Source of the DNA: Oikopleura dioica | Lineage: Eukaryota > Animalia > Chordata | Assembly: GCA_907165135.1 (NCBI GenBank) | Contig: OU015567.1 | Coordinates: 10,788,001 to 10,852,000 of the forward strand | Reading direction: 5' to 3' | Length of the DNA stretch: 64,000 nucleotides | Made by a program: the position numbers and the translations under genes | Shown here: piece after piece, positions 12,563 through 40,262 of the stretch | Layout: each line of letters opens with the position of its first letter | How positions within the stretch are numbered: position 1 is the first letter of the stretch | Notes under the pieces: model-generated | Seen by the model: only the letters and a program-made list of their open reading frames with translations | What the model was told of the DNA's origin: nothing | The model's database searches: none

Positions 12563-13192
12563 AAAACCTCTGCTCAGACTGACTTTCTTTTGTAAATAAC
12601 ATGTATAAATAAACTTAACGCACATCATAGAAGCAATAAGCGGCGGGAAGATCTAACAGATAGACTCTAGCCGTTCTTGTGCCCAAGAAAATTGCGTTTA
12701 AAACTTCAAAGTAGACATTTGATAGCCTAATTAGTAAAGTCTAGCATAAATCATCAAGTCTACTTTTTAATATTGAGTTCAGGTTTGTTTTGGTAGTAAC
12801 TAGGTGCCGGAAGTATGGTTGCGTAATTACCGCTTTTGTTAAAATCCTCCTGGTTATCATCCTCCATCAAGAAGAATGGATGCACTCTTCGCTTGCTTGT
12901 TTTTTTTTTATCAAAGCAAAAATTCAAGTGAATTTCAGTTGAAAAATAATTCGAAGAATCTAACGATCAAGACAATGAAAATACTTTATTAAAATCTCTT
13001 TTTTTTGCATATTTTCACGAGATATTTATTATAAACATTTATGATAAAATCCATGCATTTTTAGGCTCGATTGATGAGATTGAAGAGAGAATGGCTAGTT
13101 TTTTGTCGACAGGCAGGATAAGATCTTGCGCATGAGTTATACAACGAAGAAAATCTAAATTATTTTTAATAATAATTTAAGAGTTTTGATTT

Positions 13193-16179
13193 TTAGCTAG
13201 TGAAACTAATGTTTTCATTTACAAATCTACAGACGAATATAAAAGCACTTACAGAATATATTGGTCCAACGTCTTCATAATCCCAACACACAGAATCATC
13301 AAAAACTCGAATGACACCAAAGCCGCCCATTTGTTCTGGTGCTCCGAAAAGAGGTGGTCCTCCCTGAAATTTCGCAGGCTTATTTCTTAACATTTTCCAA
13401 AGGGCTTTGGATGGATCAGGAACTCTATCTTCACAGTTTTTCAAGCTAAGAACCATCTCAAGGTAGTTTTCAAATGATATTTCTTTGTAAGTACTGCTTG
13501 GTCCTTTTCCGCAATTGGTTATTATAAGAACTCTTGAAATATCAAATATGATCGAGGCAGAGTGGCTGACAACCCCATTATCTTCTGTTGACGGTTTCAT
13601 TTTTTTCGATATATTATTTTGGTACTAATAATTTCTTTTTTAATTGAAAGTGAAAATATTTTACCAATGTCGTATTATATTCTGCGAGAACTTCAATGTT
13701 AGCATGAGCATTCTTCTTGTCAAAGCAACCGAAGCGAAATGTTTCCAATTCGCGACTGATATCAGCCTCCTGGAAGTACAATCGACCATTGTAAGAAATA
13801 TAACTCCTTTGAAATATTCTATTGCGAGTTTCATCGATGTTGACGTATTCGATCATTTTACTGGTTCTTTTGTCGATGTAGACGACATTGATGGTACGAC
13901 AGGTGTTATTTTCTTCAAGAAGAACCGGATGATGCTCGAATTCGACCGCCCAGGTGGATCTTCCTAGGGTGAATGATTTATAGGTCTTTATCACGTAATG
14001 TTTTGGAACGTCAAGTCTCAATCGTTTGACCAAACCCAGTCTGTCGGCGCTAAGTTCGTGAAGTTCGACTACCCAGTATCCTTCGTCGTCTTTGCGTATC
14101 ACAGGAAAGCTAGGTTCAACAAATCGAAATCCGATGCCCGGAAAACCCGATATCGGATCGGATATTTATCGGGTTTTGTCGGGTTTCACCCTACAAAACC
14201 CGATCCTGAAAATTTCAAAAACCCGACGTAGGATCGGGTTTTTGTCGGATTTTGTCGGAATTTCGTCGGGTTTTTCTTGCCTTTTCAGCCAATCACAGTC
14301 GGTCTAAATAGCCTCTCTTGCCCTTTTTTACTCAAAAAGCACTCGAAATAGATGAGAATTGCCTCCAAAACCGGGAAAGGCAGAGAACGAGCTCTAGAGG
14401 ACATTTACATTAATCTTACCAAAGATAATCTTCTGGCGATTGACAGAATGAAATTCAGCGAGGTCCCTGGCAATTAGCGATCCATTTCGAGGGCAGAATT
14501 TCAGAGAACGCCTGAGCTTGAAGGCCTTAGCAGAACAGTCTTTTAGGTTAACTCCCACTATTTTCAACCCCATGGGTTATTTAAAGTCATGTGACCTCGG
14601 CAAGGCCTAACCCCCTAAACTGCAACTCAGCAAGGTCCAAGCTTTCTAAACATATAAAGAGGATATTTGGATTATTTATTCTATATTCTACCGTATTACT
14701 AATAATACGGTTTGAGACGAGGCGTTTTTATTGTATAAGGAGATGCACAATGGGAAAATGCACATTCTAAATAATATTATTAATGATCCTCGAAAATTGT
14801 TGAAAAAATCTGCTCAAGATAAGTTATTGACCTTCTTTTGACTTGCTTTTTTTAATTTTTGCTTGTAGGAAACCCGACAAAAATCCGACAAAAAACCCGA
14901 TAAAAACCCGATTTCGGACCCGACAAAAACCCGATAAAATCCAACGAAACCCGATCCAACAAAACCCGACCTCCTAAAAAACCCGATAAAACCCGATCTT
15001 GGTTTCGGGCGATTTTGTTGAACCTAGCAGGAAAGCAGAAATCCGAGGATAAAGGTCGATTTCCAAGTAAATTTTCGGTCTCCGGAAGGCAATAATACAG
15101 ATTCTTCCACCCTGAGAGAATAGTTGATTGAAAGTACCAACAAAGTCTCACACGTTCGAGCATGAGAGTCAGAAAAACTTACATCCTTCAACGCGGTCAT
15201 AGACGGCGAACGGAATAGTATCAACGCTATGAACGAGATCGGGAAGATCAAGACGCGTTTTCTCCAGATCATAGTAATCGTAGTGATGAAATTCTCCCGA
15301 AGATTTTTGTCGATTGAAAACCATTAGTTTGGAACCGACTAGATCGAATAATCTGTAATGTGTAAATGGAGATTCCATGATCATATCAAGATTTCCATTG
15401 AGGATATGCTCCTGAAGCTCTTCATATGGGCCGACTTCTATAGTTTTTATAAGGACGGGTTGGACAATATCTTCTTCTTCTCGGTCAAGATAATAAACAA
15501 ACAACACAACATCAGAAGCTTCGTTAAATTCTTCGAGATCATCTCCAAAGAATGTGTGTAATTGACCGGGTTCTTCCAAAGAATCCCTTTCATAATAATC
15601 TTTCCTCAAATCGCATAGTTGTTTGTTTGATACGAACTACAAGATACAAGTCAGTGACTTTCGATTAAAATATCAATTTACGTAATCAATTGATCCTTTG
15701 TAGTCAAGATCGAAGCTGTGATCGTCTCGTGAATAAACTATTCCTTTGTGTAATGCTCCCTTTTTCTCCCATTCACAAAGATACGACCCGTAGATCTTAT
15801 GGGTGTCCTTTTTCAAGTGATTGAGTCGCTTCATTATCTGTGGAATGCCGGAAAGAGGAGGTCGAGTCTCGGTATTTCTCTCGTATTCGGCGCGGACGAG
15901 CTTCAAAAGAGGTTCTTCGCGTTCAAATCTATTTAGAAACAGCTGGCAATCGTTGAAGCTGAGAAGCCCGTCAAAGTCGTTCTTCGTTTCGTCACTTGAT
16001 GCCAGAACATTTTTGGCATCTCTGAATCCTTGCATAGGCATTCTCTCGAAGACAAGGTTCGCAATCAATCGATTCTTCGGATGAAGTGTTATCATGTTCA
16101 GCACTCCCCGCTGAAACTGTTCTGTCGTCATTTCATTCTCTTCTTTTGGATCCATTTTTCTGCGCTTTCGACAAGACAT
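13193..16179 (-). CDS. Multi-exon protein with weak F-box-like N-terminus and beta-rich C-terminal region; one exon is interrupted by a TIR element at 14110-15027
   Basis: ORFs 16179-15673, 15609-15169, ~15100-15028, 14102-13614 and 13600-13193 join via GT-AG introns. Removing the element plus one TSD restores ...SSDFCFP-VIRKDDEGYW... in frame. Trans-splice-like TTTTAG acceptor just upstream of the ATG. The F-box call is only a loose motif match. Confidence 0.6.
14110..15027. mobile_element. Non-autonomous hAT-type DNA transposon (918 bp) inserted in a coding exon
   Basis: 14-bp perfect TIR CTAGGTTCAACAAA (14110-14123 / 15014-15027), 8-bp TSD CAGGAAAG (14102-14109 / 15028-15035), and clusters of subterminal AAAACCCGA/TCGGGTTTT repeats at both ends; no transposase ORF. 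Confidence 0.92.
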
Positions 16180-17392
16180 TTTTCGATCAACAATCTAAAA
16201 GAACCGATTTCAACCTAGTTTAAATACAAAAAAAAAATAAAATATAGCTCGACTTGGATGAGCGCCGAGTAACAGGAGCATCGGGTTCTTGCTTTCATCA
16301 CTTCTAAGGCCGCGCCTTACAATGAATAATACAGAATAAAAAATGTCACAGGTCGGAAATTGTTTACGGCTGACGAACTTTTCCTTTGAAATAGTCTTAA
16401 TAGTCGAGTTTTGGACGTTTATGCACAGAATTTCCCTCCGAAATTCCTGAGCCATTTCTAGCATCATTAAAAATCGATCAAAAATGCCTCTTCAACCCTG
16501 TTTTCCGCTGAGTCATCAATAATTTCCCATCGAATTTCAAACAACGCCGCTGCGAAACCTTCCAATTCCTTTGTCTCGCGCTGCGGGCGTCCTGTTTCGC
16601 CAAAAAAGCAACTTGGCTCACAGTAGTAAAGGGAAGTTGATAGCTCAGAAGAGGAAAATCAGGGTCAGGGCGGGCCAGTGACCCCGAAACGGCGTATTTT
16701 TTGGCGCGCTGTGCGAATAAAGACTATTGGCGCGTTTTGGCCGTTGGTCGTTGGCCGCGCGGAACGCTCCAGTTTTTCTTCTCTCGCGAAAAAATAAACC
16801 GAAAAAAAAACTCACGCGAAACAGAAAAATCATCGAAAAAGAGAGACCTTGCGAAACAAAACTAGAGTTATTGCTCATCGTGAAAAAATTGAACCGTTCC
16901 ATTTTTTCCTCTATCGAAAAATCGAAAAAACTTAAAATAGAGATTGGCTGAAAAAGAAAACTGACGAAAAAGAAGAAAATTTTAGCCGCGAAAATTGAAA
17001 AAGTGTGCAATGCGAAGCTTGACATGGAAAATTTAAAGGAAATGGCTTGTTTCGATTTTTTTCTTTTGCGGAATTGTTCTAGAACTTCTCTTGATTAGGC
17101 TCTGCTTACATTGGCCGAGAGTTATTCGTCTTTTTTTCATAAAAATACACGGTCAAAGGTAACGATTTTTGATATTTATTGTAATTGAATTTTAATTTTC
17201 TTTTGAGAGATTAGCTTTTCGAGATTATTCTCTCTAGCGATTCGAATTTTTTAATTTTTTGGCTCGATTTTTCACGTCGCTGGCCATATTGATTTTTTAT
17301 TTACGAGAAATAAAACCTTCTCAGGTTCTGAAAAGTACGAATTTTTCACTTTATTTTTGATAATTTATTTTCGCCTTCTAGTGTGTTTGGAA

Positions 17393-22428: not shown

Positions 22429-25171
22429 ATGACTCGTGTCTTGAAGCAAGGCGAATACACCTCAACTGTGTACAAGTTGATTGCTGATGGCGACTACAAA
22501 GAGGCGGCTAACATTCTCGAGACAGAAATGAAGCGATCTGGACAAGAATCTCGAGCTGCTCTTTCATTGATTGGTGAGTCGCTGTTAATCTCAAAAATTT
22601 ATGACTCTCGATGGGTTCATATTATTTGCACAAACAGTGCGTAATTTATCTTGTAGCCACATGCAAATATCATATGGCAGCAGTACCCGAGCAGTTTGAG
22701 TCCGCCGCGGGCGTGTACTACAGACTTATCCAGCTGTGTCCCGATAATGATGACTACAAGTTTGACCTTGCCATGTGTCTCTACAAAGCGTGCAAGTATG
22801 ACGAAGCCATGAAAGCTTCGTTCGCTGTCCAGTCCCCTAAGTTCTCAGGACGAGTCCAGCAGCTTCAAGCGGCGATAAAGTACATGGAAGATGATCTACC
22901 CGCCGCCCAGGGGTGTGCATTCGGCTCTCGGGCATTCGGCTGCCCGACAAATTTTTCGGGCAAATCAGGTTCGGCTCGGCTCTCGGTCGGCCGGTGACCT
23001 GAAATTCTCTCGGGCAGGTTCGGGCAGGCTCGGGCATTCGGGCAATTCGGCCCAATCTTCGGGCAACCGGGCACCCGGCCAAAGTTAGAGAGTAAGAAAG
23101 AATTTTACAGAGATCTGTGCTTGATTCTTCGACTGATATCTACCAATAACCATATAAATTGATAACCCAAAATTTTGCCATCAGAAATTTGGCCGATTTT
23201 CCTCAAAATCGGTTGTTTTTTGAGCTCAGATTTATATTAATTTTCCGAAAATCATTGCCCGAAATGCCCGAAAATTAGCCCAAATTGCCCGAGCCGAAAG
23301 TTGAGCCGAAGCCGATTCGGGCACTTCGGGCACCTCGGCTCGGCTCGGCTTTCGGCCGGCCCAACACTGATTTTTTCGTTTCGGCTCGGCCCTCGGTCGG
23401 CCCGACACCCGATTTCAGGCCGAATGCACACCCCTGCCGCCGCCAAGAGTTTGATCGAGAAGCAGGGCGAAGATAGCTGCGAAGCCGTCGTGAATCAAGG
23501 TTGTATTTTATATAAAGAAGGCTACTACTCGGAAGCGATCGAAAAATTCCAACAAGCGATTCAATTAGAAGGCGTCAAGGCCCACCTGAGCTACAACATC
23601 GCGCTCTGCTATTTCAACATGAAGCAATACTCTCACGCTCTCAAGAATATCGCTGAAATCATCGAACGCGGCATAAAAGACCACCCTGAACTCTCTGTTG
23701 GTCTTGCTACGGAAGGAATCGACGTCAGGAGTGTGGGAAACACGGCGATCTTGCACGAGACCTCACTAGTTGAAGCGTTTAATCTGAAGGCGGCGGTAGA
23801 GTACAACATGGGCCCAGCGAACATCGACGCCGCAGCTGAAGCACTTACAGATATGCCTCCGAGAGCAGAGGAAGAACTTGATCCAGTTACGCTTCATAAT
23901 TCTGGTATGCTCATTCAATTCGTTTGCGCTCCATATTTATTCTTCAGCTCTCATCAACATGGAAGAAGAACCATCTGAAGGCTTTGAAAAGCTGCAGCAC
24001 TTACTTGCTTCTGGCGTTGCCCCTCCAATGACCTTCCCAAATCTGATCATTCTCTATCTCAAGTTTGGCTACTATAGTCTTGCCGCAGATACCCTCGCGG
24101 AGAATCCGGACTTAGTGACAAAATTTATGGATCGCTTTCAACAAGAGTTTGTTCATGCCGTCATTATGGTTGAGCAGAGCCCCGATGAAGCATACAAGCG
24201 TCTTGAACAAATGGCATCAAGGTAATTTTCAAGTCAGTTGTACCCGAATTTAATTCTCTCTTTGTAGACAAACTGACAATCTTCGAAAATACCTGAAGAC
24301 AATTCAGGAAGCTCAAAAATCTGACGATAAGCATGCATTGAAGAAAGCTGTCCACGCATACGATGACGAGCTAGACCGATTTATTCCAGTGCTTATGCAG
24401 CAAGCGAAGATCTATTGGGACAAAGAAAACTACGACCAAGTGGAGAAGATCTTCCGAAAGTCCGTCGAGTTCGGAAATGAAAACGACACATGGAAACTCA
24501 ACGTGGCGCATGTTCTGTTTATGCAAGAAAACGGTCAAAACTCAAGTCCTCATAAATACAAAGAAGCTGCTGGTTTTTACGAGCCAATCGTCAAAAAGGA
24601 GAATCAGAGCATCCTCAACGTAGAAGCGGTTGTTTTGGCCAACTTGTGCGTCTCGTACATCATGACATCGCAAAATGAAGAAGCAGAAGAGCTCATGCGA
24701 CAAATCGAAAAAGAAGAAGAACAGCTTGCTTACGAATTTCCAGAGAAGAAGGTGTACCACTTATGCATCGTCAACCTCGTAATTGGCACACTCTACTGCT
24801 CTAAAGGAAACTACGAATTCGGCATATCGCGAGTCATCAAAAGTCTTGAGCCTTTCCAGAAGAAACTGGGCACAGATACCTGGTTTTATGTGAAACGATG
24901 CTTCTTGAGCTTGCTGGAGGCAATGTCCAAGCAACTGGCGCTTCTTCCAGACAACATTCTCTTCGAGAGCTTGGACTTTTGGAAATCTGTGAACAGTTCG
25001 GTCGAGGTAATTTTCTAGACGGTCGTTTCAGTTTTCTAAACTCCATTCTCAGAGATCAAAGCACGTGATGTGGACCCATTGAGCACCGAGGCTAGAGATG
25101 CGCGGAACACCGTCGCCTTCGAATCGCGAATGCTCAAATGCCAGCTTCTTCGACTCATGGGATGGCCTTGA
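22429..25171 (+). CDS. TTC30: Intraflagellar transport protein 70 / TTC30 (TPR protein); exon interrupted by a TIR element at 22908-23436
   Basis: GEYTSTVYKLI, AMCLYKACKYDEAMK, LQAAIKYMEDDL, LSYNIALCY, ALKNIAEIIERGIKDHPELSVG, LVEAFNLKAAVEY, DMPPRAEEELDPVTLHN, ENDTWKLNVAHVLFMQE, HLCIVNLVIGTLYCSKGNYEFGISRVIKSLEP, LGTDTWFYVKRC. One apparent -1 slip in a T-run at ~24980. Confidence 0.95.
22908..23436. mobile_element. Non-autonomous hAT-type MITE (529 bp) inserted in a TTC30 coding exon
   Basis: 18-bp perfect TIR CAGGGGTGTGCATTCGGC (22908-22925 / 23419-23436), 8-bp TSD CCGCCGCC (22900-22907 / 23437-23444), subterminal TCGGGC/GCCCGA/CGGCTC repeats and an AT-rich core. Confidence 0.93.
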
Positions 25172-29368: not shown

Positions 29369-32300
29369 ATGGAAAAGCTTCAAGGTTGGTTTAAAATTCT
29401 TTCACCCGATAAAGTCAATAATTAAATTAGCTCTTGGCCGGGAAATCCGCTATGTCGAGTACAAATTACGACGACAGAAGCAAGAGAAAAAGAAGATGAA
29501 ACAAGCGCAAAAAGATTTCACATATGGAACCAACTCGATGTATGAGCCTAATAATGGTGGCGGAAGAACAACTACGGTATCAATATCAGTAGGGTTCGCG
29601 CCCAAAAATCAAGTGCCCGAAATACTTATTCTATCTTTCTGAATTTTAGATATATGATAGATAAGGGCAAATAAAGTATAAATTGTTTTAAAATTTATCA
29701 AAATTTAAGAGGGTTGAAGAGAAAATAAGCCCCAAAAATGCCAAAAATGGGTTGACCATGTTAGTCAGCCCAAAATTAAAAATTTCAAAAAATGGTATGA
29801 TCAGTAGAGGTTTCTGATCATTTTTTGATAAAAAAATTTTGGGAAGCATCTACGGTTTCCCTAGAATTTACAAAAAACTGCCTTTTTTTGGCAATGTTTT
29901 TCTGTTACGTGATCATGCGCGCGCACGCGTAACCGCGCGTGATGGGGGTGGCCACGTAAAATTCCAATCAATTTTGCCGGAAAATTTTAATTCTTCTTTT
30001 TAACATAATTAATAAATAATTAATAATTTAAATAATAAAACTATAATAAATATGAGCTCATAATACTTTTATTAATCATAAATAATTATAAATTGAAAAA
30101 TTTTCTCTTTTTATCTTTGAGAAACCTAAAAGATCCTCTAGATTTTTAAAAGATCACCTTACGTAGGTCCACCGCTTAAAAATCGCTCTATTTTTTTTAA
30201 AAGCCCTCTTTTTTTTTAAAAAAATGAGAATTACTGTTACGAAGGAGACATTTTGGGGACGGCATGGAAAGAAGATCGCCAATATTCTTGGCATGCTAGC
30301 TTTTATGTTTGGCTACGCATCAGGTAACTTTTTGAGATCAAGGGATCCCCCCTGTTTTTTCAACTCTTTATCACGGGTAATACATTAAAATCACTTCTTC
30401 GGACCAAAATCCTGACCCCAATGTTTTTCGTTCTTATCTTGTAGCGCAGTTTCTGGGGAGTCGAATAATATAATTTTTATGGGTCGGTAATACTATATTA
30501 TATCGGGTTCTAGAGCTATAAGTACGTGAAAATAACAAGTACTGAAGCCTCAGAACTCTGAAACTTTCTTTTTAAAGTATAGTGAATTTGGGCTCTTTCG
30601 AAAGCCCAGCTCAAACTGTGGTTGGGCAGACTATGCATGACGTAAAATTTTGTGAAAAAAATTTTGAGTGGAAAGTTTTTTGGCTCAAAAAATTTTTCTG
30701 TTGAGAATTATCGGCTGCCCACCAACTGCCCAACCACAGTTTGAGCCGGGCTTTCCAATGATACCCATTTGTCCATACTTTCTTTAAAAATTTTCGGAGA
30801 TACAGGGCTTCACTAGAATTTTTCAATAGGGGCGCCTATGACGTCATTAATGATGACTCAGACCCTGAAAGGTATATGAATCGACTCCTCAGGAGCTGCC
30901 CTTTCGAATGAGAATAAGAAAGATGGAGGATAGAATTTTTTCCGAAGAAGTGATTTTCATGTATCGGGTCTCTTTATGGCATATTTAGATTCTTGCCCTC
31001 AAAAGTCGTAAAAATGCATATTAATTGAACTTTGCGTAAAAATCGCATTTTTTCCACTTTTCAATATCAACGACAAAAGACAAAAAAGGGGGTCTATCGA
31101 TAGCTTAGAATGCAACGAGAAAGAATATGACGACCGCACTAGAATTTCTGGCCATATATTGGCGGTAGAGAGCAAATTAAAGCCAGAAAAGGGCCAAAAA
31201 AGCATCAAAAATTTTTCTCAGGCAAAATAATTTATCCCAAATGGGCTGAATTTCCAGTCAAAATTGGAAAAAACGGAAAGGGGGTGATCCCTCAAAGAAT
31301 CGCCTGTTATAAGACATAAAACAACTATGATCATATCGACCGGGGGATCCTTAACTCGTAATTATGGTGAAGATTTAAATTATATTTGTAGGATTTCTCC
31401 ATGCATTCTTCATGAAGAAGAAAGAAGAAATCGAATTTCAGAAGATAATAGATAATCTGGTAAGTTCGAGATTAACGAAGTGATACCCTTAAAATTTTAT
31501 CTTTATTAACAGTAGCTTATGCCAGCAAAACACAAAAGCTCGTCTCTCGGACATTCTTGAATAAGTAAACATGGGAATTTTTTGTCCAACAAAATCTGTC
31601 TCTCATACTTTGCAACGAAATCAAAAATTTGAGAAAGAGTCTTTGAGACGGAAAAAACAAATGAATTATTACGATCATTATGTAATATTATCTTGTTTAA
31701 TGATAGAAGCTCAATACAAGAGCTTCATTCCATGAGTTATTTTTCGAGAAAATGATACACAATTTAATTTTATTTTTTTCTACGCTTGTCACAGGAAAAT
31801 GGACAAGAGAATCTTTTGATTAGGTCACGAGATAATACTGCTTTACAGAGGTTTAATTATTATTATCTTTCAAAAGATTTGACTGCGCGGTCGCCAAATT
31901 ATGAGAACGAAAGTCTTGAAAGTTCGCTTCGACATATACAGCGTTTTAATCGTAAATTAACGACGAGTAAAACATATTGTCACAGTGCTGTTTTTATGAC
32001 TATTCGGCTCCCAAACCCTTATGTTCGAGATGAATGGACTTACCTGCGGAATGTTATTGGAAGTAAAGTTGTTCTCAGTCGCTTAGCCTATAATTATTGA
32101 CACTCCCACTGATTACAAAAAAGAGCTAAAATTGAAATTCTTGCGCCGCAATGCCATGATAAAATTTCAAATGTCGGAAATTATGACTTGGACAATGATG
32201 CCGGAGTTGTTTTTAATTATATTTTAAGGGAAACAGGGGTTAACTTAAAATTTGAAGTTTTCTTAAGCTAACCCTCAAAGGGATCAAGAGATACCAGATT

Positions 32301-35300
32301 TTATTGAAGCTTGGTCGCCAAAACTCGCTGAAATTCTTCTTGGTGATACTGACACAGTTTTTACTGTCAGTACAATATTGTAATAGGAAGTAAACGCGAT
32401 CTAACAAATGAATATTATTCAGTATTCGTTTTGAAAAGCAGAAGAAACGTAAGCCTTTTATATTTGACTTGCTTTACAAAATGTCGGAGGCTTCTCATGA
32501 TGAGAGTAAAACAGGTAAAGCTCTATTAAAAATCAATTCTAAAAATGAATTTCAAAGTGCTCCAGGGAATTATGACACAATCTAACTATGTCGTCGAATA
32601 TATTGAATCAGCTTTCGAAAAAGGATTCAAAAAATTATGGAGAATAATATATTGTATTATCTTGCATCCCTTTTAGTTATTTTTGATGGCGACCAAACAG
32701 AAAGGGAAAATAATATAAGAGAAATTCTCCAAACAATCGAATCTATTACTCAAAACTATTTAACTCATCTTGATGAAACCGAGAGTGGAGGCGATCATGG
32801 ATGGTTTCTCGTTTTGGCTAGAAAAAGATAATTTACCATTTTATTTGCTCAAGAAGCTAACAGTGATGTTTGCAAGTGCCTTCCTTTTTTACCTGAGCTC
32901 GGGTCAAGCGTATTTGACAAGACGAACTGATTTTTGTTTTGGCTTTTCATCGCGCTTGTAATAGAAAGTTGTTAACTTGCCATAAGAGAAATTCGATCGA
33001 AGGCACTGCAATTTGCGCTGTTAAAATTTTGAATTCAGAAAATATTATTTTCTCTATTTCTAGCCATATAAGATGGATTGCAGCATATAGTAGAATTAGA
33101 AATGAGCGACCGGCTTGGAGAAGACGTAACGCAGACTTTTATTGAGATTTTCAAAGAATATGCACTTGAACAAATTTTTCACAGCGAATAAAACTCATGA
33201 TGAATTTTCCAAAATTGCAAGAGCTTTCATTCGTTCAGCTTCAATGTCTTCCTCTCGTTCATTTTCACGTTGTCTCATTCCCTTATAAATATAAATTGAA
33301 TGCACAGTTAGAATCGAAGTTGGTCACCTCCCAAATCAACGCTTCTGCCTTTTCTTCATCATCAAGGAGTTTCAGATGCTCAAATGCTTTGTTTTGTTTT
33401 GCGATCGTAAGTCGCCACAGACGTATATCAAGCGTTCGAGTATCCGAAGTTTCAAGGCCCTTCAGAATTCAGAAAGGAAGGTTTCAGAAGCACTTTTTAA
33501 TAACAGTCAGGGACAGGGCGAAGCCGACCCGAAGGGGAGGCCACGCTCGTTTTTAATTACCGTCAGGCACAGAGCGTGGCCTCCCCTTCGGGTCGGCTTC
33601 GCTCTTTTTTCATTACTGTAAGGGACAGGGCGAAGCCGACCCGAAGGGGAGGCCACGCTCGTTTTTAATTACCGTCAGGCACAGAGCGTGGCCTCCCCTT
33701 CGGGTCGGCTTCGCTCTTTTTTTCATTACAGTAAGGGACAGGGCGAAGCCGACCCGAAGGGGAGGCCACGCCCGTTTTTTAATTACAGTCAGGGAGAGCG
33801 TGGCCTCCCTTCGGGTCGGCTTCGCTCTTTTTCATTACAGTAAGGGACAGGGCGAAGCCGACCCGAAGGGGAGGCCACGCCCGTTTTTTAATTACAGTCA
33901 GGAAGAGAGCGTGGCCTCCCCTTCGGGTCGGCTTCGCTCTTTTTTCATTACTGTAAGGGACAGGGCGAAGCCGACCCGAAGGGGAGGCCACGCCCGTTTT
34001 TTAATTACAGTCAGGGAGAGAGCGTGGCCTCCCCTTCGGGTCGGCTTCGCTCTTTTTCATTACTGTAAGGGACAGGGCGAAGCCGACCCGAAGGGGAGGC
34101 CACGCTCGTTTTTAATTACCGTCAGGCACAGAGCGTGGCCTCCCCTTCGGGTCGGCTTCGCTCTTTTTCATTACAGTAAGGGACAGGGCGAAGCCGACCC
34201 GAAGGGGAGGCCACGCCCGTTTTTAATTACAGTCAGGAGAGAGCGTGGCCTCCCCTTCGGGTCGGCTTCGCTCTTTTTTCATTACTGTAAGGGACAGGGC
34301 GAAGCCGACCCGAAGGGGAGGCCACGCCCGTTTTTTAATTACAGTCAGGAAGAGAGCGTGGCCTCCCCTTCGGGTCGGCTTCGCTCTTTTTTCATTACAG
34401 TAAGGGACAGGGCGAAGCCGACCCGAAGGGGAGGCCACGCCCGTTTTTAATTACAGTCAGGGAGAGAACTAAGCCTCTCTTTACAATTTATGAAACCTTG
34501 ACCAAACGTTCGCTCTAAAATTCAAATGAGAAAAATTCAGAAGAAATTCCGCTTACCAACAGGGCGATTGTCAGAAACGGCGACAATATTGTGCGGAATT
34601 CTATTTTTGTAAGCAGAAATCTCTGTATATTCTTTCGTCCACTTTTTATTAATACTCTCCCAAGCGACTGAAACTAGCTCGTTCAGTTTTCGGATCCAAG
34701 TCAATTTTCGTCGATGTTGATGGAGAATTACGTTCATTTTGTCAATCAAAAGAAGAATATCAGCCCCGGTTTGTTGATTCTGTCGCTCGGAATGAAGGAA
34801 TTTTCCTCTTTCCTCAAACATCACCATAAGATTATGAAACGCCGTATCGAAATTTTTTCCCAAAACAATTGGGTGTAAATTAGTTAAAGTTCAAATAAAA
34901 TTTAAACCCAGCCCATAATATGAAGTGAATAGACCCCTGCTTAACACGCTCCATTCTTTTCTCCATATCTGTGTACGCTTTCAAAAGTGAGCCGTAAGTT
35001 CTAAAATTTTTATTTTGTTATCAGAACAGGCCTTTCCTACCGTGAATGTCCTCCAGATGATTTAAGAAAAGGCTCGCTTACCGCCCACCAAAACATTGGT
35101 ATTATAGAAGATTTCAGTTTTGTCAAGTCGTAATCAGATTTTTCCGAAATGGTAAGAATCTATAAATTTTTGACGCTTAAAGCAAGAGTATATTTTTAAT
35201 ACCATGTTAGCGAATTTTCTGTCCCGATAATCCCGACAAGTTTTTAAAACAAGTTCTTCGTGTTTAAAAAAATTAAGCACGTTCGCTTGATGGACTGCGT

Positions 35301-38300
35301 AACTAATCTATGTTTGGAATAATTGTTTAAAATACGCATATTACCGGGATCCAATGTCCGAGAGAAAGGGGCGTGTCGAAAACGTTTCAGCTTCGAGAAA
35401 CGAAGCTTCGAGCCCAAAACGAATATCAGATCTACTATGACTGCATGTTGTTCGACTTCCGAAACTCATTTTTAGACTGTGTAGAAGATTCCAAGTGTCT
35501 TAGTTATTGGCTGAATTAAATATCTTATTGATTTGATGTATGTAGGAAAAAGCCGCTTCGCGGCTAGGTTTTTGTTAATAATTCTGATCTGTTATTTTAA
35601 CCATTTCCTGCGGGTCGGCCTTTCGGATTTTCAGCAAGTGCATCTCTTGATTTATCTTCGAACATAAAGTGTTCATAACTTCGAAGATCAAAGTTTGCCG
35701 CTTTGCAGTGATCGACATTGCAATCATAAAAATTTAAAAAATGCTTAGATCAAAAACTGACCCCTTTCCCACATGCATAACACAATGTAAAGGAATCGCT
35801 CCGGAGAAGCCATTTTCTTTAAGCTTATCAGAAAATAAAATGTTCGCCTTGAGCTGGGCATGAGCTATGAGATTGGATAAATACTTTAAACCCTTTTTAT
35901 CATACCTGTATCGCTCACTACGAACTTAAGCTTTTGAAATAACATCCGATAGAATGGCAATTTTATCAATTCTGCGAAGGCGGATTCTGCAATGTTTTCT
36001 GCAGAATGCTTTAACCGGCTTCAGATGTTTTTTTAAGGCAATATAAAAAAACAAGATTTAAGAATCTCAATTGTTTCAAAAAGAATTTTTGAAAAATGCC
36101 AATTTGACAATCCAAGTGTGAAATTTTAAACTTATTTACCACTTTTTAGTTTTCCCTCTACCGTTCCTTAATTTGCTGAAACAGGGACAAAAGCATAAAC
36201 CCACCACGTTCATTTGAAACTCCTAGTGCAGCGACCGCGCGATTACGCCTACTAGTGCTCCCGTCCATGTGAATGGTCAGGTAACGTGATGAGCGAACAA
36301 AACTCTCCATTTGATCATGAAGGATTGGGGTAAAGGCCCCAGTTAAGGAGGTGATAAAATTTTGGGAGGGCATAGCAACTGATTTGTCTGGATCGTCAAG
36401 AGCATTCTTCAAATCAGGAAAAAGATCAGTGAATTCTTCCAACGTCGATTGTATAGTCAATGTTGGAATACCCTTCATCTTAGATATAAGCAGAAATTTG
36501 ATCAAAGGAGTGTCGTAAGTTGGCTCAAATTCAATCTTACTAAAAGAAAATAAATTTCAGAGTTACCGTCATTTGACCGCGAATATCGCGGTTTCGATTA
36601 ACGGAGGTTGCAGGCGGATTCTTTTTTTGGAAGATAGATACAACTGGGCAGGTTTTCACTTCCAAAAATTCCGGAACAGGAATCGGAGACGGTGTTGGCT
36701 CTTGCCTAGGCCTTTTTGACGTTCTGGTAGCAGGAATTGTGCAAAAGTGATACTCAAAAGTCCCCATGTTTTCAAGCATTTCTTTTATTTTCTTTGAAAT
36801 ACGCGCAGAGTTCTGCCAAACAGCTTGTTCCATATCAACTTCATCCCAAATTTGAGCTCGAATATCAGTGTCAAGTATCCAGGACAAAAGGACCCTGTGC
36901 GCACCCTTCGTTGGGCGTATAAAATTCAACCAAGCATTATTTCCGTCTCGAGTACCTTCTCTCTTAAGTGTCTCTTTTTCTTCCCAATCTCTGAGAGTAA
37001 TCACGTCACTGTATGTCGTAACCAAGTATTTTGCAGTTTCGTAACTCATAGGACATGCCGGAGTTAGACTGGAAACAAACCCACAAAATATAAGATAAAT
37101 TTTCATATTTTAGGATTTTGGAAGAGAAATCCTCGTAGATCCATTTTTAAATACAGTATTATCAAAAATTATGTCATTCTCAGTTGTAGCCCAAACGACT
37201 TCTTTTCAATCTTTTTCATGACGCTGCAAAGTCTGAGAGACCAGCGCGGCTGTTCAAGTCGAGTTTCTTCATGTTTCAGAAAATCTTAGCTTAGCTAACG
37301 CTAAAATTCCGCCTGTGGTAGATAGATATGACCAATATCTAGTGCCGTTTTTCGGAGTTTCAATTGCAGTAGAGAGCCAAGAGTCAAACCTGTTTTTGAA
37401 AAGTAGCGATTTCCGCCTCTCGCAGGATTAAAATTTTCTTAAGAAAAATAAGTCTGATCATGGAATTCTCAGTAGATGAAGGTAGATCATCCCCTTATCT
37501 TATGCCGTTTTGAGAAAATTTTGTGTGCCCAAAACATACTTAACAAATTTTTTTTTTGAAGAAGTGGTTCAAAAATGAAGATTTTCATGAAATCAATGGT
37601 TAGTAAAAATCGCCTCTAAAATCCCGAAAATTAGCCCGTTTTATAATAGATCGACCAATTTTTAGTAATTAAATATGTAATTACTTAGTTTTCGTCCAAA
37701 AAACATTAACAAAAACTCCTTGGAACATTTATAGAATGATTTTAATACTGCTGAATACAAATTCAAAATTTAATTTTTTCATTGAAAATCGTGAAAAACA
37801 GGTAATCGATTTTTTTCTTACAAAATTTTTGAAATTTTAAATTCTGGTCTCCATAGGATCTAGACAAGGGTCTTATCTAACTTCTCAGAAGAAAATAAAT
37901 TCCGCCCTATATAAGGGTTTCGAGAAAAGTCTGCCAGGAAAATGGTCATTTTTAGCGATTTCCGAGTTTTCAACGCCATTTTTTACGATTATTTTCTGGA
38001 GATATAGAAATCGGCCTTCCATAGGCACGAGATAAGGGCCTCAACTCTCTATTAAAACAAAAAAAATCATTGGTCACTATGTTAGGATTGGGAGAAAAGT
38101 CTACCAGAAACTCCCGATTCTTGATATCTACCTCCTTAAGAGAAAATGACTTTATTTTCAGGATCCTGAAATCAAGGAAGAGAATGGATTCGTGGCGACT
38201 CGGCTTGGCCTTCGTGAGTGGAAGATCGGAATGGCTTTTTAATTAAATTTAGTATATATTTATTATTGTTAATTGGAAAATATTAAAAAAGCCTTAAATA

Positions 38301-40262
38301 GAAGAATAGAAAATTGTTTTTTTTTTGAAAAATAAAAAAATGACAATTATTTATGTTGTATCTTCTATTTTTATTAATATCATTTTAAATCATTTTATAA
38401 ATCTTTTTAAAAGAAAGAATTTCTTTAAAAAGAAAGAAATACCCATTACGCGCCGACCACCCTAGCCGCGCAAGGAAATGCCTGAGGGCGAACGCGGCGC
38501 CGTGCGCTCCGCGCCGCGCAAAGATCGACAAAAATAGACCTTCAATGGTCAATTACAGTATGTTAGTCATCTGCTTCCCATTATTTTTCAATCGAATATT
38601 GTTCTCCTCAATCAAAATTATATATATATCCAAAAAATTTCTGGGAAGCTTTTGACTAACATGGTTTTTGAACATAAATTTCCCTATATCTCTTCAACCC
38701 TTTAATTTTTTTTTCGGTGAAATAGATTTTTTTAACCTTTAAACAGATAAAAAACACCTATAAAAATTTGAAAACAATTGGATTTGTCTATCAAAAGATA
38801 GTTTTTTTGGGCGCGAACCCTAAATATCAGGCAATTACAGTCAGTGAGAGCGCATTAATTTAGGCGGAGGAGTTGAATTTCGAGGATCAGCCGGGATCCG
38901 GTAGCACTGAAAGAAATCAGACTAACAGTGAATACGATAGAGCACGGCCAGCAAACGCCGAAGAAGAAAAACTACAACTAGAGGTGACTAAATACTGCTT
39001 TTATCTTGCTATCACGTTTTTAGCTCGCATTGGCAATGTCTCGCGAAAGTGCTCCTCCAACCCAGCCAACTACAGGAAACCTAATTCAACCAGCAGCTAC
39101 AGTTACCCCTGCCCCGCCAGCTTCAACCCAACCACAGGCATCTTTTGATCCATGGGCTTCATCAAGTTCGACTCCCGTTGTTACTGCTCCTCCCGCAGCT
39201 CAAAAAGCGGCTCCTGCCACTAGTTGGGAGTCGTTTTCGAATGCTCCACAACAAGCAGCAACTCCTTCATCGTCAGATCCTTGGGGTACCCCAGCTCCTG
39301 CTGCGCCAAAGGCTTCAGCGGCTCCGGGTGCTAGTTGGACAGGTTTATAGCTATTTGATTGCGTTGTTTAATTTGTCTGATAGCATTTGATGACTCTTTT
39401 GGTACTGCATCCGCCTCTGCCACGACATCCGCCGCTAGTTACCCTCCACAAGCAGACTCTGTTCCTGCTGCGAAACCAGACTCATTCTTCGACTTGCCGA
39501 TCTCTGATCCAACCCCAGCGCCCGTTTCTCAGCCCGCTGTAGCTCCAGTTATGACGCCGATGACGCCGCAAGTCGCCCCTGAGAATGATCTTCTGGGCGG
39601 AGAAGTCGGAACATTGACCAGTCAAAATACTACGAGCGCTGCCCAGAAAAATGAAAAGATGCGTAAAACACCCACTGATTTCCTTGGAAAGGGAGCGAAT
39701 CTTGTTAACTTCGACAATCTTGTCTCGAGACCATCTGGTGCCGGAGCGATCAATCCATTCATGTCGTCGGGATTGCAGAAGACTAATCCATTCCACGCAA
39801 AAGGGCCAGGTAAATGCAATTCATGCCTTTGTACTCTTAGAGTTCTCTGAGTCAGAATTTAACAATTTTCAGAAGTTATTCATTCTACTAATCCCTTCGA
39901 CAACCTCTCTGACCCTTGTGGTACAGTATTCTAATTATTAGTAAAACATGGTTGTCGGTAATCTTTTTCTCGGTGTTCCTTTTATTGTCGGTGCATTTTC
40001 TTCTCACGCTAACACTTTTCAAGGTCTGTCGATGAACGCCATGGCCTCACAGCAAAACAAAGGTGGCTTCGCCGCCCTCGACGGAACTGGCATGGCTCCT
40101 CTCCAGCCGATGAACAACAATTCGGTCATGCAACCAATTCAGCCCACGAGCAGCCACGCGCCTGTCTTCTCATCCACCGCTCAGAACACAATGTTCGGCG
40201 CGAAGCCAATGTCCAGCCAACATTTCAATCAGCAAGCGTTTCGAAATAAATTATTTTTCTAG
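29369..40262 (+). CDS. EPN: Epsin-like protein (UIM, DPW and NPF motifs; no recognisable ENTH domain). Exons 29369-29384, 29431-29576, 38864 onward; intron 2 contains the 9.2-kb hAT element
   Basis: RARPANAEEEKLQLE|LALAMSRE (UIM), DPWASS, DPWGTP, KTPTDFLGKGANLVNFDNLV, AINPF and KTNPF. Removing the TE and one TSD leaves a typical 46-nt GT-AG intron that joins ...GGGRTTT to AEELNF... in phase 0. Confidence 0.8.
30224..33145 (+). CDS. Putative multi-exon passenger gene inside the hAT element; unknown product, possibly partly decayed
   Basis: First exon MRITVTKETFWGRHGKKIANILGMLAFMFGYAS with a GT donor; further AG/GT-bounded coding-like blocks at ~31105-31160, 31391-31458, 31796-32100, 32637-32961 and 32939-33145; AATAAA at 33187-33192 just downstream. 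A full reading frame could not be assembled. Confidence 0.4.
33195..37106 (-). CDS. hAT-family DDE transposase, intron-containing; 5' end approximate
   Basis: RYLTIHMDGST (first D, 36263-36265); HSAENIAE...KLKFVVSDT|AHAQLKAN (second D, 35910-35912); HCVMH CxxH motif (35773-35784); FLSDIGSR; NRPV-E-RTFG (catalytic E motif, compare Hermes ERTFS; codon split across a 42-nt intron 34556-34515); downstream exons KGLETSDTRTLDIRLW... and GMRQRENERE...ILENSS* ending at 33195. Confidence 0.8.
33494..34466. repeat. Array of 17 ~35-nt GC-rich cores in strictly alternating orientation (9 forward, 8 reverse), separated and flanked by 18 same-orientation ~21-24-nt linkers; period ~112 bp
   Basis: Forward core AGGGCGAAGCCGACCCGAAGGGGAGGCCACGC(T/C)C; reverse core AGAGCGTGGCCTCCCCTTCGGGTCGGCTTCGCTCT; linkers T5-7AATTAC(A/C)GTCAGG(G/C/A)A(G/C) and T4-7CATTAC(A/T)GTAAGGGAC. 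Confidence 0.97.

Follow-up and report, generated by a model that had tools for sequence, protein, structure and literature searches.

A 64-kb window of the Oikopleura dioica genome (the whole stretch of DNA analysed here, positions 10,788,001 to 10,852,000 of contig OU015567.1) contains a 918-nt, apparently hAT-like transposable element that interrupts the last coding exon (exon 3) of a three-exon gene on the minus strand. The original prediction, made from the letters of the window, had placed the element in a coding exon, which is borne out, and had proposed that it is removed from the transcript as an in-frame intron whose splice sites lie in its own ends. Our results show that the host gene is real and the insertion young. 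The reading that we favour, at a little under even confidence, is that of a recent insertion allele, with plain disruption as the default and a GT-AG pair at the element's tips as at most a leaky rescue.

The interrupted gene and the inserted element

The host gene consists of the following parts:

15682-16179, minus strand: host exon 1, with the ATG at 16179
15637-15681, minus strand: host intron 1, 45 nt, GTAAAT..TAG
15183-15636, minus strand: host exon 2, conserved in the related contigs L001 and L002 (ratio of non-synonymous to synonymous substitution rates, dN/dS, 0.21)
15112-15182, minus strand: host intron 2, 71 nt, GTAAGT..CAG
15028-15111, minus strand: host exon 3, part upstream of the insertion
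13614-14109, minus strand: host exon 3, part downstream of the insertion, ending with the stop codon at 13614-13616

When the element and one copy of its target-site duplication (TSD) are removed, a single open frame of 507 codons results, reading ...LSSDFCFPVIRKDDEGYW... across the site. Exons 2 and 3 differ from the DNA of the relatives by 37 synonymous and 33 non-synonymous changes, against a synonymous expectation of 21% (p = 4e-9), and dN/dS over the two exons is about 0.21. The host open reading frame (ORF) is a real coding gene under purifying selection. It is also small and species- or lineage-restricted. The protein matched no Pfam family, and its sole relative among 1.84 billion representative proteins was P0001, which in turn found only itself among 5.8 billion clusters, so that these gave no transcript or allele of the same species across the junction. 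An Atlas search with host exon 1 reached a best score of 0.68, which is not meaningful, and an exact look-up of two neighbouring ORFs of the window for other assemblies of the locus returned no record. An AlphaFold model of the empty-site homologue, made to ask if the insertion site falls in a loop, was unusable (pLDDT 35).

The element and its boundaries are composed as follows, in the order of the gene strand:

15028-15035: TSD copy 2, 8 bp, CAGGAAAG on the plus strand
15014-15027, minus strand: terminal inverted repeat (TIR), 14 nt, the reverse complement of CTAGGTTCAACAAA; it forms the gene-strand 5' end, with the proposed donor GT at 15023-15022 after CTAG
14865-15013: subterminal repeat zone of this end, which pairs with 14124-14290 in the predicted RNA fold
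14110-15027: the whole non-autonomous hAT-like element, 918 nt, without a long ORF
14124-14290: subterminal repeat zone of the opposite end, with AAACCCGA and TCGGGTTT motifs
14110-14123, plus strand: TIR CTAGGTTCAACAAA, 14 nt; it forms the gene-strand 3' end, with the proposed acceptor AG at 14111-14110
14102-14109: TSD copy 1, 8 bp, CAGGAAAG on the plus strand and CTTTCCTG on the gene strand, present once in L001 and L002

Perfect inverted ends (14/14 between the two TIRs) and a perfect target duplication (8/8) delimit the element. A repeat finder had reported a 15-nt perfect inverted repeat (I18) and a 9-nt direct repeat (D17), which we resolved as the 14-nt TIR and the 8-bp TSD. The gene strand reads ...tttctgCTTTCCTG/CTAGGTTCAACAAAatcgcc ... 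gatTTTGTTGAACCTAG/CTTTCCTGtgatac...; as predicted, the element opens there with ctag/gttcaa at 15027, and it closes with ...ttgaacctag at 14110. There are 11 copies of the motif AAACCCGA and four of its complement, and all 15 are restricted to the two end zones of about 170 nt. Scanning the window for perfect TIRs of at least 10 nt next to perfect 8-bp TSDs returned exactly three elements, at 14110-15027 (918 nt), 22908-23436 (529 nt) and 29590-38822 (9.2 kb). Since only 0.04 would be expected by chance, the element at 14110-15027 is real.

The combination of an 8-bp TSD, short TIRs and subterminal repeats, as in the Ac/Ds anatomy, marks non-autonomous hAT elements (PMC3260210). All three were found here, with a TIR within the class of about 10-25 nt and subterminal repeats of the transposase-binding type at both ends, and by these features the element looks hAT-like. 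The usual tip of a hAT TIR is of the CAG/TAG type. Here the tip is CTAGG, and a shift by one base would read TAGG but would break the TSD. The predicted assignment to hAT thus agrees with the TSD, the TIR and the subterminal repeats; the tip is atypical, and no matching transposase was found in the window. For Dimorphilus, the genome paper lists Mariner and MULE as the only DNA transposons, which led to its rejection as a possible source of this DNA.

The 9.2-kb element at 29590-38822 has a 19-nt TIR (TAGGGTTCGCGCCCAAAAA), a perfect 8-bp duplication (AATATCAG) and a tip resembling that of the 918-nt element, the overlap between the two tips being limited to TAGG(G)TTC. Pfam gave no match for six of its ORFs, each about 100 aa or longer, and no transposase was recognised among these six.

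The search for further members of the family gave no second copy. With up to two mismatches allowed, the TIR CTAGGTTCAACAAA matched only the two ends of this element in the 64-kb window, and the full 918-nt sequence had no other copy there. The translated element end, used as a protein query, had no homologue in the protein collection. A TIR 17-mer hit 76 loci in metagenome contigs, none of which shares anything else with the element, and these are chance matches. A single copy is thus known across the window, the protein collection and the metagenome contigs.

The empty site and the age of the insertion

P0001 shares a cluster with P0002, and the two proteins are encoded in different ENA metagenome assemblies, on contigs L001 and L002. 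Both contigs span the site with one CTTTCCTG and no element, reading ...LLSDLCFPVIRKDDE..., and their translation ...CFPVIRK... supplies the empty site that the original prediction had expected to read DFCFPVIRK. In the contigs, the stretches that align to the two flanks of the element have 9 nt in common, which corresponds to the 8-bp target and one further matching base. Since the exon in L001 and L002 lacks the element and is otherwise colinear, the segment 14110-15027 is a true insertion. Its perfect TIR and TSD show that it is young, as does its absence from the closest haplotypes or relatives.

Over the compared region (13188-15499), the identity of L001 and L002 to the window is uneven. 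It is 85-92% around and upstream of the site (upstream of about 13870) and 100% over 13673-13274, and the two contigs are 99.6% identical to each other. From the alignments, this mosaic suggests deep haplotypes that recombine within a single, highly polymorphic gene pool, more than it does a separate species. On such a reading the insertion itself is probably polymorphic.

The DNA runs in which words of the locus occur include some labelled marine metagenome. For a query made of the element and its flanks, with a flank fraction of 0.395, the share of words found was 0.39-0.46 in six runs and 0.60 in one. Shares near the flank fraction may reflect a predominance of the empty allele among the samples, although thinning of the words by single-nucleotide polymorphisms explains them equally well. 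The maximum of 60% of sampled words in any listed DNA run could also be taken to mean that a misassembly placed the element here, and a related explanation holds that the host ORF was already a dead pseudogene. Both are very improbable, given that genuine transposition leaves just such a mark, a perfect 8-bp TSD around perfect TIRs, and that all three exons are open in a gene under purifying selection.

Possible fates of the host transcript

At the level of sequence, intron-like behaviour of the element is plausible, though it does not count as an established intron. The GT-AG pair that would bound the predicted intron of 914 nt is present in the letters, with GT at 15023-15022 and AG at 14111-14110. 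Removal of these 914 nt would retain CTAG and the second TSD copy, 12 nt that add the residues ASFP without a stop, to give ...DFCFPASFPVIRK... in frame; the proposed 15024/14109 junction reads ...CCTGCTAG/CTTTCC.... The claim that the TIR would provide donor and acceptor in either orientation is likewise supported, since the palindromic tip CTAG/GT...CTAG/ presents identical GT and AG dinucleotides both ways. The further claim that any exonic insertion would keep the frame needs to be narrowed. The sum of 4 + 8 = 12 nt does hold the frame, but CTAG gives an in-frame TAG in one of the three insertion phases, and some exonic insertions would therefore not be harmless.

In an introner-like scenario, the spliceosome would take the GT at TIR positions 5-6 as donor and the AG at the tip of the opposite TIR as acceptor, removing 914 nt and adding ASFP. 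The pair 15023/14110 is present, keeps the frame and introduces no stop, and no other pair of this kind lies within 40 nt of both ends of the element; when GN-AG pairs were also checked, no other in-frame, stop-free pair was found within 12 nt of both ends. Exonic elements seem frequent (two of the three young elements of the window), and the relatives L001 and L002 lack the element at the same site of a colinear exon. Validated introners are also known from a tunicate and from a sea urchin (PMC12130899).

The closest precedent is found in the alga Aureococcus, where introners are non-autonomous DNA elements with an 8-bp TSD that carry both splice sites (Huff et al. 2016; Gozashti et al. 2022, PMC9860276, Fig. 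2F-G). In comparison with an element-free isolate, 4 nt of the element plus the TSD are kept in the mRNA, that is, 12 nt and four residues (PMC9860276). The element described here has the same 4 + 8 = 12 layout and an element-free relative, and this architecture, being already published, is not new. In contrast, the Aureococcus introners are short (about 77 nt in the example), occur in many copies inside genes and have been seen spliced, whereas here a single 918-nt copy lies in an animal genome, with a weak donor and with splicing proposed from its sequence.

A number of points speak against spliceosomal removal. When random elements with random 14-nt TIRs were simulated at this site, 17% gave one or more pairs of this type no farther than 12 nt from the ends, and 12% had both splice sites inside the element; an in-frame GT-AG at this site is, by itself, not beyond chance. 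The donor tag/GTTCAA lacks the purine at +3 and the G at +5, whereas the host gene's own donors are GTAAAT and GTAAGT. Short ORF-bridging introns of the window, picked by eye, have donors GTAAGT, GTAAT or GTGAGT and lengths of 37-71 nt. The window has about 41% GC, and those of its introns that can be recognised are of the canonical GT-AG type and about 45 nt long; for larvacean tunicates, 39.8-41.3% GC and median introns of 48-51 nt have been reported (PMC8008620). At 914 nt, the proposed intron would be about 20 times as long as the introns usual in the window (42-71 nt). A splice-site model of the window was not used, its expectation-maximization run having converged on coding-sequence noise and its hexamer enrichment being too noisy. 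The in-frame TAG in one of three phases and the single known copy, which offers no family-level pattern, count against this scenario as well. In addition, both proposed splice sites lie inside the helix of paired ends in the minimum-energy fold. Taken together, we regard spliceosomal removal as unlikely, although a serious candidate.

Two other systems bear comparison. In maize, the ends of the hAT element Ds1 supply donor and acceptor sites (PMC5432752, PMC5395267). Ac/Ds elements share with ours the non-autonomous hAT-type design, the 8-bp TSD, short TIRs (about 11 nt), subterminal repeats and ends that give splice sites within genes; their splicing, however, is usually imprecise, with several cryptic sites, and they have no symmetric tip with a fixed 3n footprint. 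The second system is that of Fritillaria borealis, whose introns bear TIRs and TSDs and have been attributed to insertions of miniature inverted-repeat transposable elements (Henriet et al. 2019 via PMC11282704; PMC13326754). This too is a marine animal genome with TIR- and TSD-bearing introns, but the introns there end in AG/AC or AG/AT, canonical GT-AG making up only 5% of the total, in contrast to the canonical GT-AG introns of about 45 nt in this window.

The predicted RNA fold of the element also bears on a different mode of removal, in which paired inverted ends would be recognised in the pre-mRNA, the element would be cut out at positions that vary within the TIRs or close to them, and RTCB would ligate the ends, with only some products in frame. 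In silico, the TIR and about 150 nt of subterminal repeats form a long imperfect helix between both ends, at -304.7 kcal/mol and z = -5.6 versus shuffles. In C. elegans and human cells, such pairing triggers the removal of exonic DNA transposons, a process termed SOS splicing that was described for Tc1, Tc3, Tc4 and HSMAR2, with junction formation dependent on AKAP17A, CAAP1 and RTCB (Zhao et al., Nature 2025, PMC12779559). The likeness lies in an exonic DNA transposon with inverted ends able to pair in RNA, and removal would explain tolerated exonic insertions. On the other hand, SOS junctions are heterogeneous and mostly not GU-AG, the process has been shown for other elements, of the Tc1/mariner type and not hAT (a term absent from PMC12779559), and the perfect TIR here has only 14 nt. 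Removal of this type appears improbable at this locus. The authors of that study also speculate that transposons evolve splice sites within their ends (PMC12779559).

Plain disruption remains the outcome that we favour, as worded at the outset. A non-autonomous hAT-like cut-and-paste transposon landed recently in the last coding exon of the lineage-restricted 507-codon gene. Unspliced RNA would then read into the element and reach a stop after 58 element-encoded residues, for a product of 403 aa instead of 507, and the transcript could end early at either of two AATAAA signals that the element has on the gene strand. The in-frame GT-AG would be a by-product of the palindromic tip and, if used at all, would rescue the gene only in part. 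That two of the three young elements in the 64 kb (14110-15027 and 22908-23436) are exonic matches insertions too recent to have been purged by selection.

Several observations weigh against disruption. The pair 15023/14110 is unique as an in-frame, stop-free GT-AG near the element's ends, the 4 + 8 layout is that of introners proven elsewhere (PMC9860276), and a second exonic element lies in the conserved gene IFT70 of the same window. Moreover, the RNA runs have zero reads on the host exons and no joints, so that neither disruption nor removal is visible. The same blank counts against the two forms of removal, as it leaves the proposed intron with no spliced read and SOS-type excision with no reads at the locus. 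To outcomes other than disruption, spliceosomal removal, pairing-triggered removal and artefact we assign a small probability.

The mapping covered 13000-16600 and used four runs, three of them bulk oligo-dT and one single-cell, with 1.3-1.8 billion letters sampled from each. With no read on any exon, these runs carry no information on splicing. The neighbouring coding region at 13600-13193 was equally empty of reads, and the share of locus words in the indexed RNA runs was 0.00 in all of them. Of the DNA runs under the same species label, many likewise share 0.00 of the window's 31-mers. Because many runs under this label thus appear to come from a diverged lineage and the neighbouring coding region is empty too, the blank is likeliest to reflect lineage divergence and not a silent host gene.

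Only 4 or 5 partial reads per bulk RNA run were recovered, on the subterminal repeat. Such reads, from three RNA runs, match only the repeat of about 40 nt at 14869-14911, with 90-95% identity and unrelated flanks, which suggests transcribed elements elsewhere that carry the same motif.

The inference of the original prediction that this family is a self-contained, orientation-independent generator of introns is so far unsupported. A broader proposal, which we consider rather doubtful, is that this animal harbours hAT-like elements whose palindromic CTAG/GT tip would make each copy an orientation-independent GT-AG intron with a fixed 12-nt footprint. The Aureococcus design would then have re-arisen in a metazoan, on an element of about 1 kb, caught here at the stage of insertion polymorphism. 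If the element is spliced as proposed, the locus would show the birth of an animal intron almost as it happens, with the pre-insertion allele persisting in nature, and transposon-driven intron gain, a design proven in an alga, would become directly testable in a culturable metazoan. The idea itself is of a known kind; its new part, if true, would be a hAT-like example of about 1 kb in an animal that is still polymorphic. If it is not spliced, the locus would represent an ordinary loss-of-function insertion allele.

Other elements and neighbouring features

The 529-nt element at 22908-23436 has the TIR CAGGGGTGTGCATTCGGC and the 8-bp duplication CCGCCGCC, and splits a conserved coding exon of IFT70/TTC30. 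Taking it out restores ...DDLPAAKSLIEKQ..., and a relative from a JGI metagenome (P0003, contig L079, 80-84% nucleotide identity) has the uninterrupted site with the same ...DDLPAAKSLIEKQ.... Here a GT in the TIR (CAGGG/GT) could be joined with a host AG located 13 nt beyond the element, and the segment so removed would equal exactly the element length plus 8 nt. The proportion of exonic insertions among the young elements of the window suggests a genome with very active hAT-like elements, or one with tolerance of them in exons.

Near the 3' end of the host gene, at about 13656, a run of T has four T in the window versus five in L001 and L002. This one-base difference shifts the last 15 or so host codons, so that the C-terminus reads ...KYFHFQLKKKLLVPK before the stop in the window versus ...KYFSLSIKKEIISTKIIYRKK before the stop in the two contigs; an assembly error is also possible.

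Two ORFs lie beyond the host stop codon:

13193-13600, minus strand: ORF with its own ATG, 14 nt past the host stop, running into a GTAAGT intron at about 13251; its spacing to the host gene is operon-like, and it is 100% identical in L001
12020-12448, plus strand: ORF that includes a homeobox-like stretch, ...KRMRTIFTKAQIERLEQEF..., and runs convergently to the host gene region

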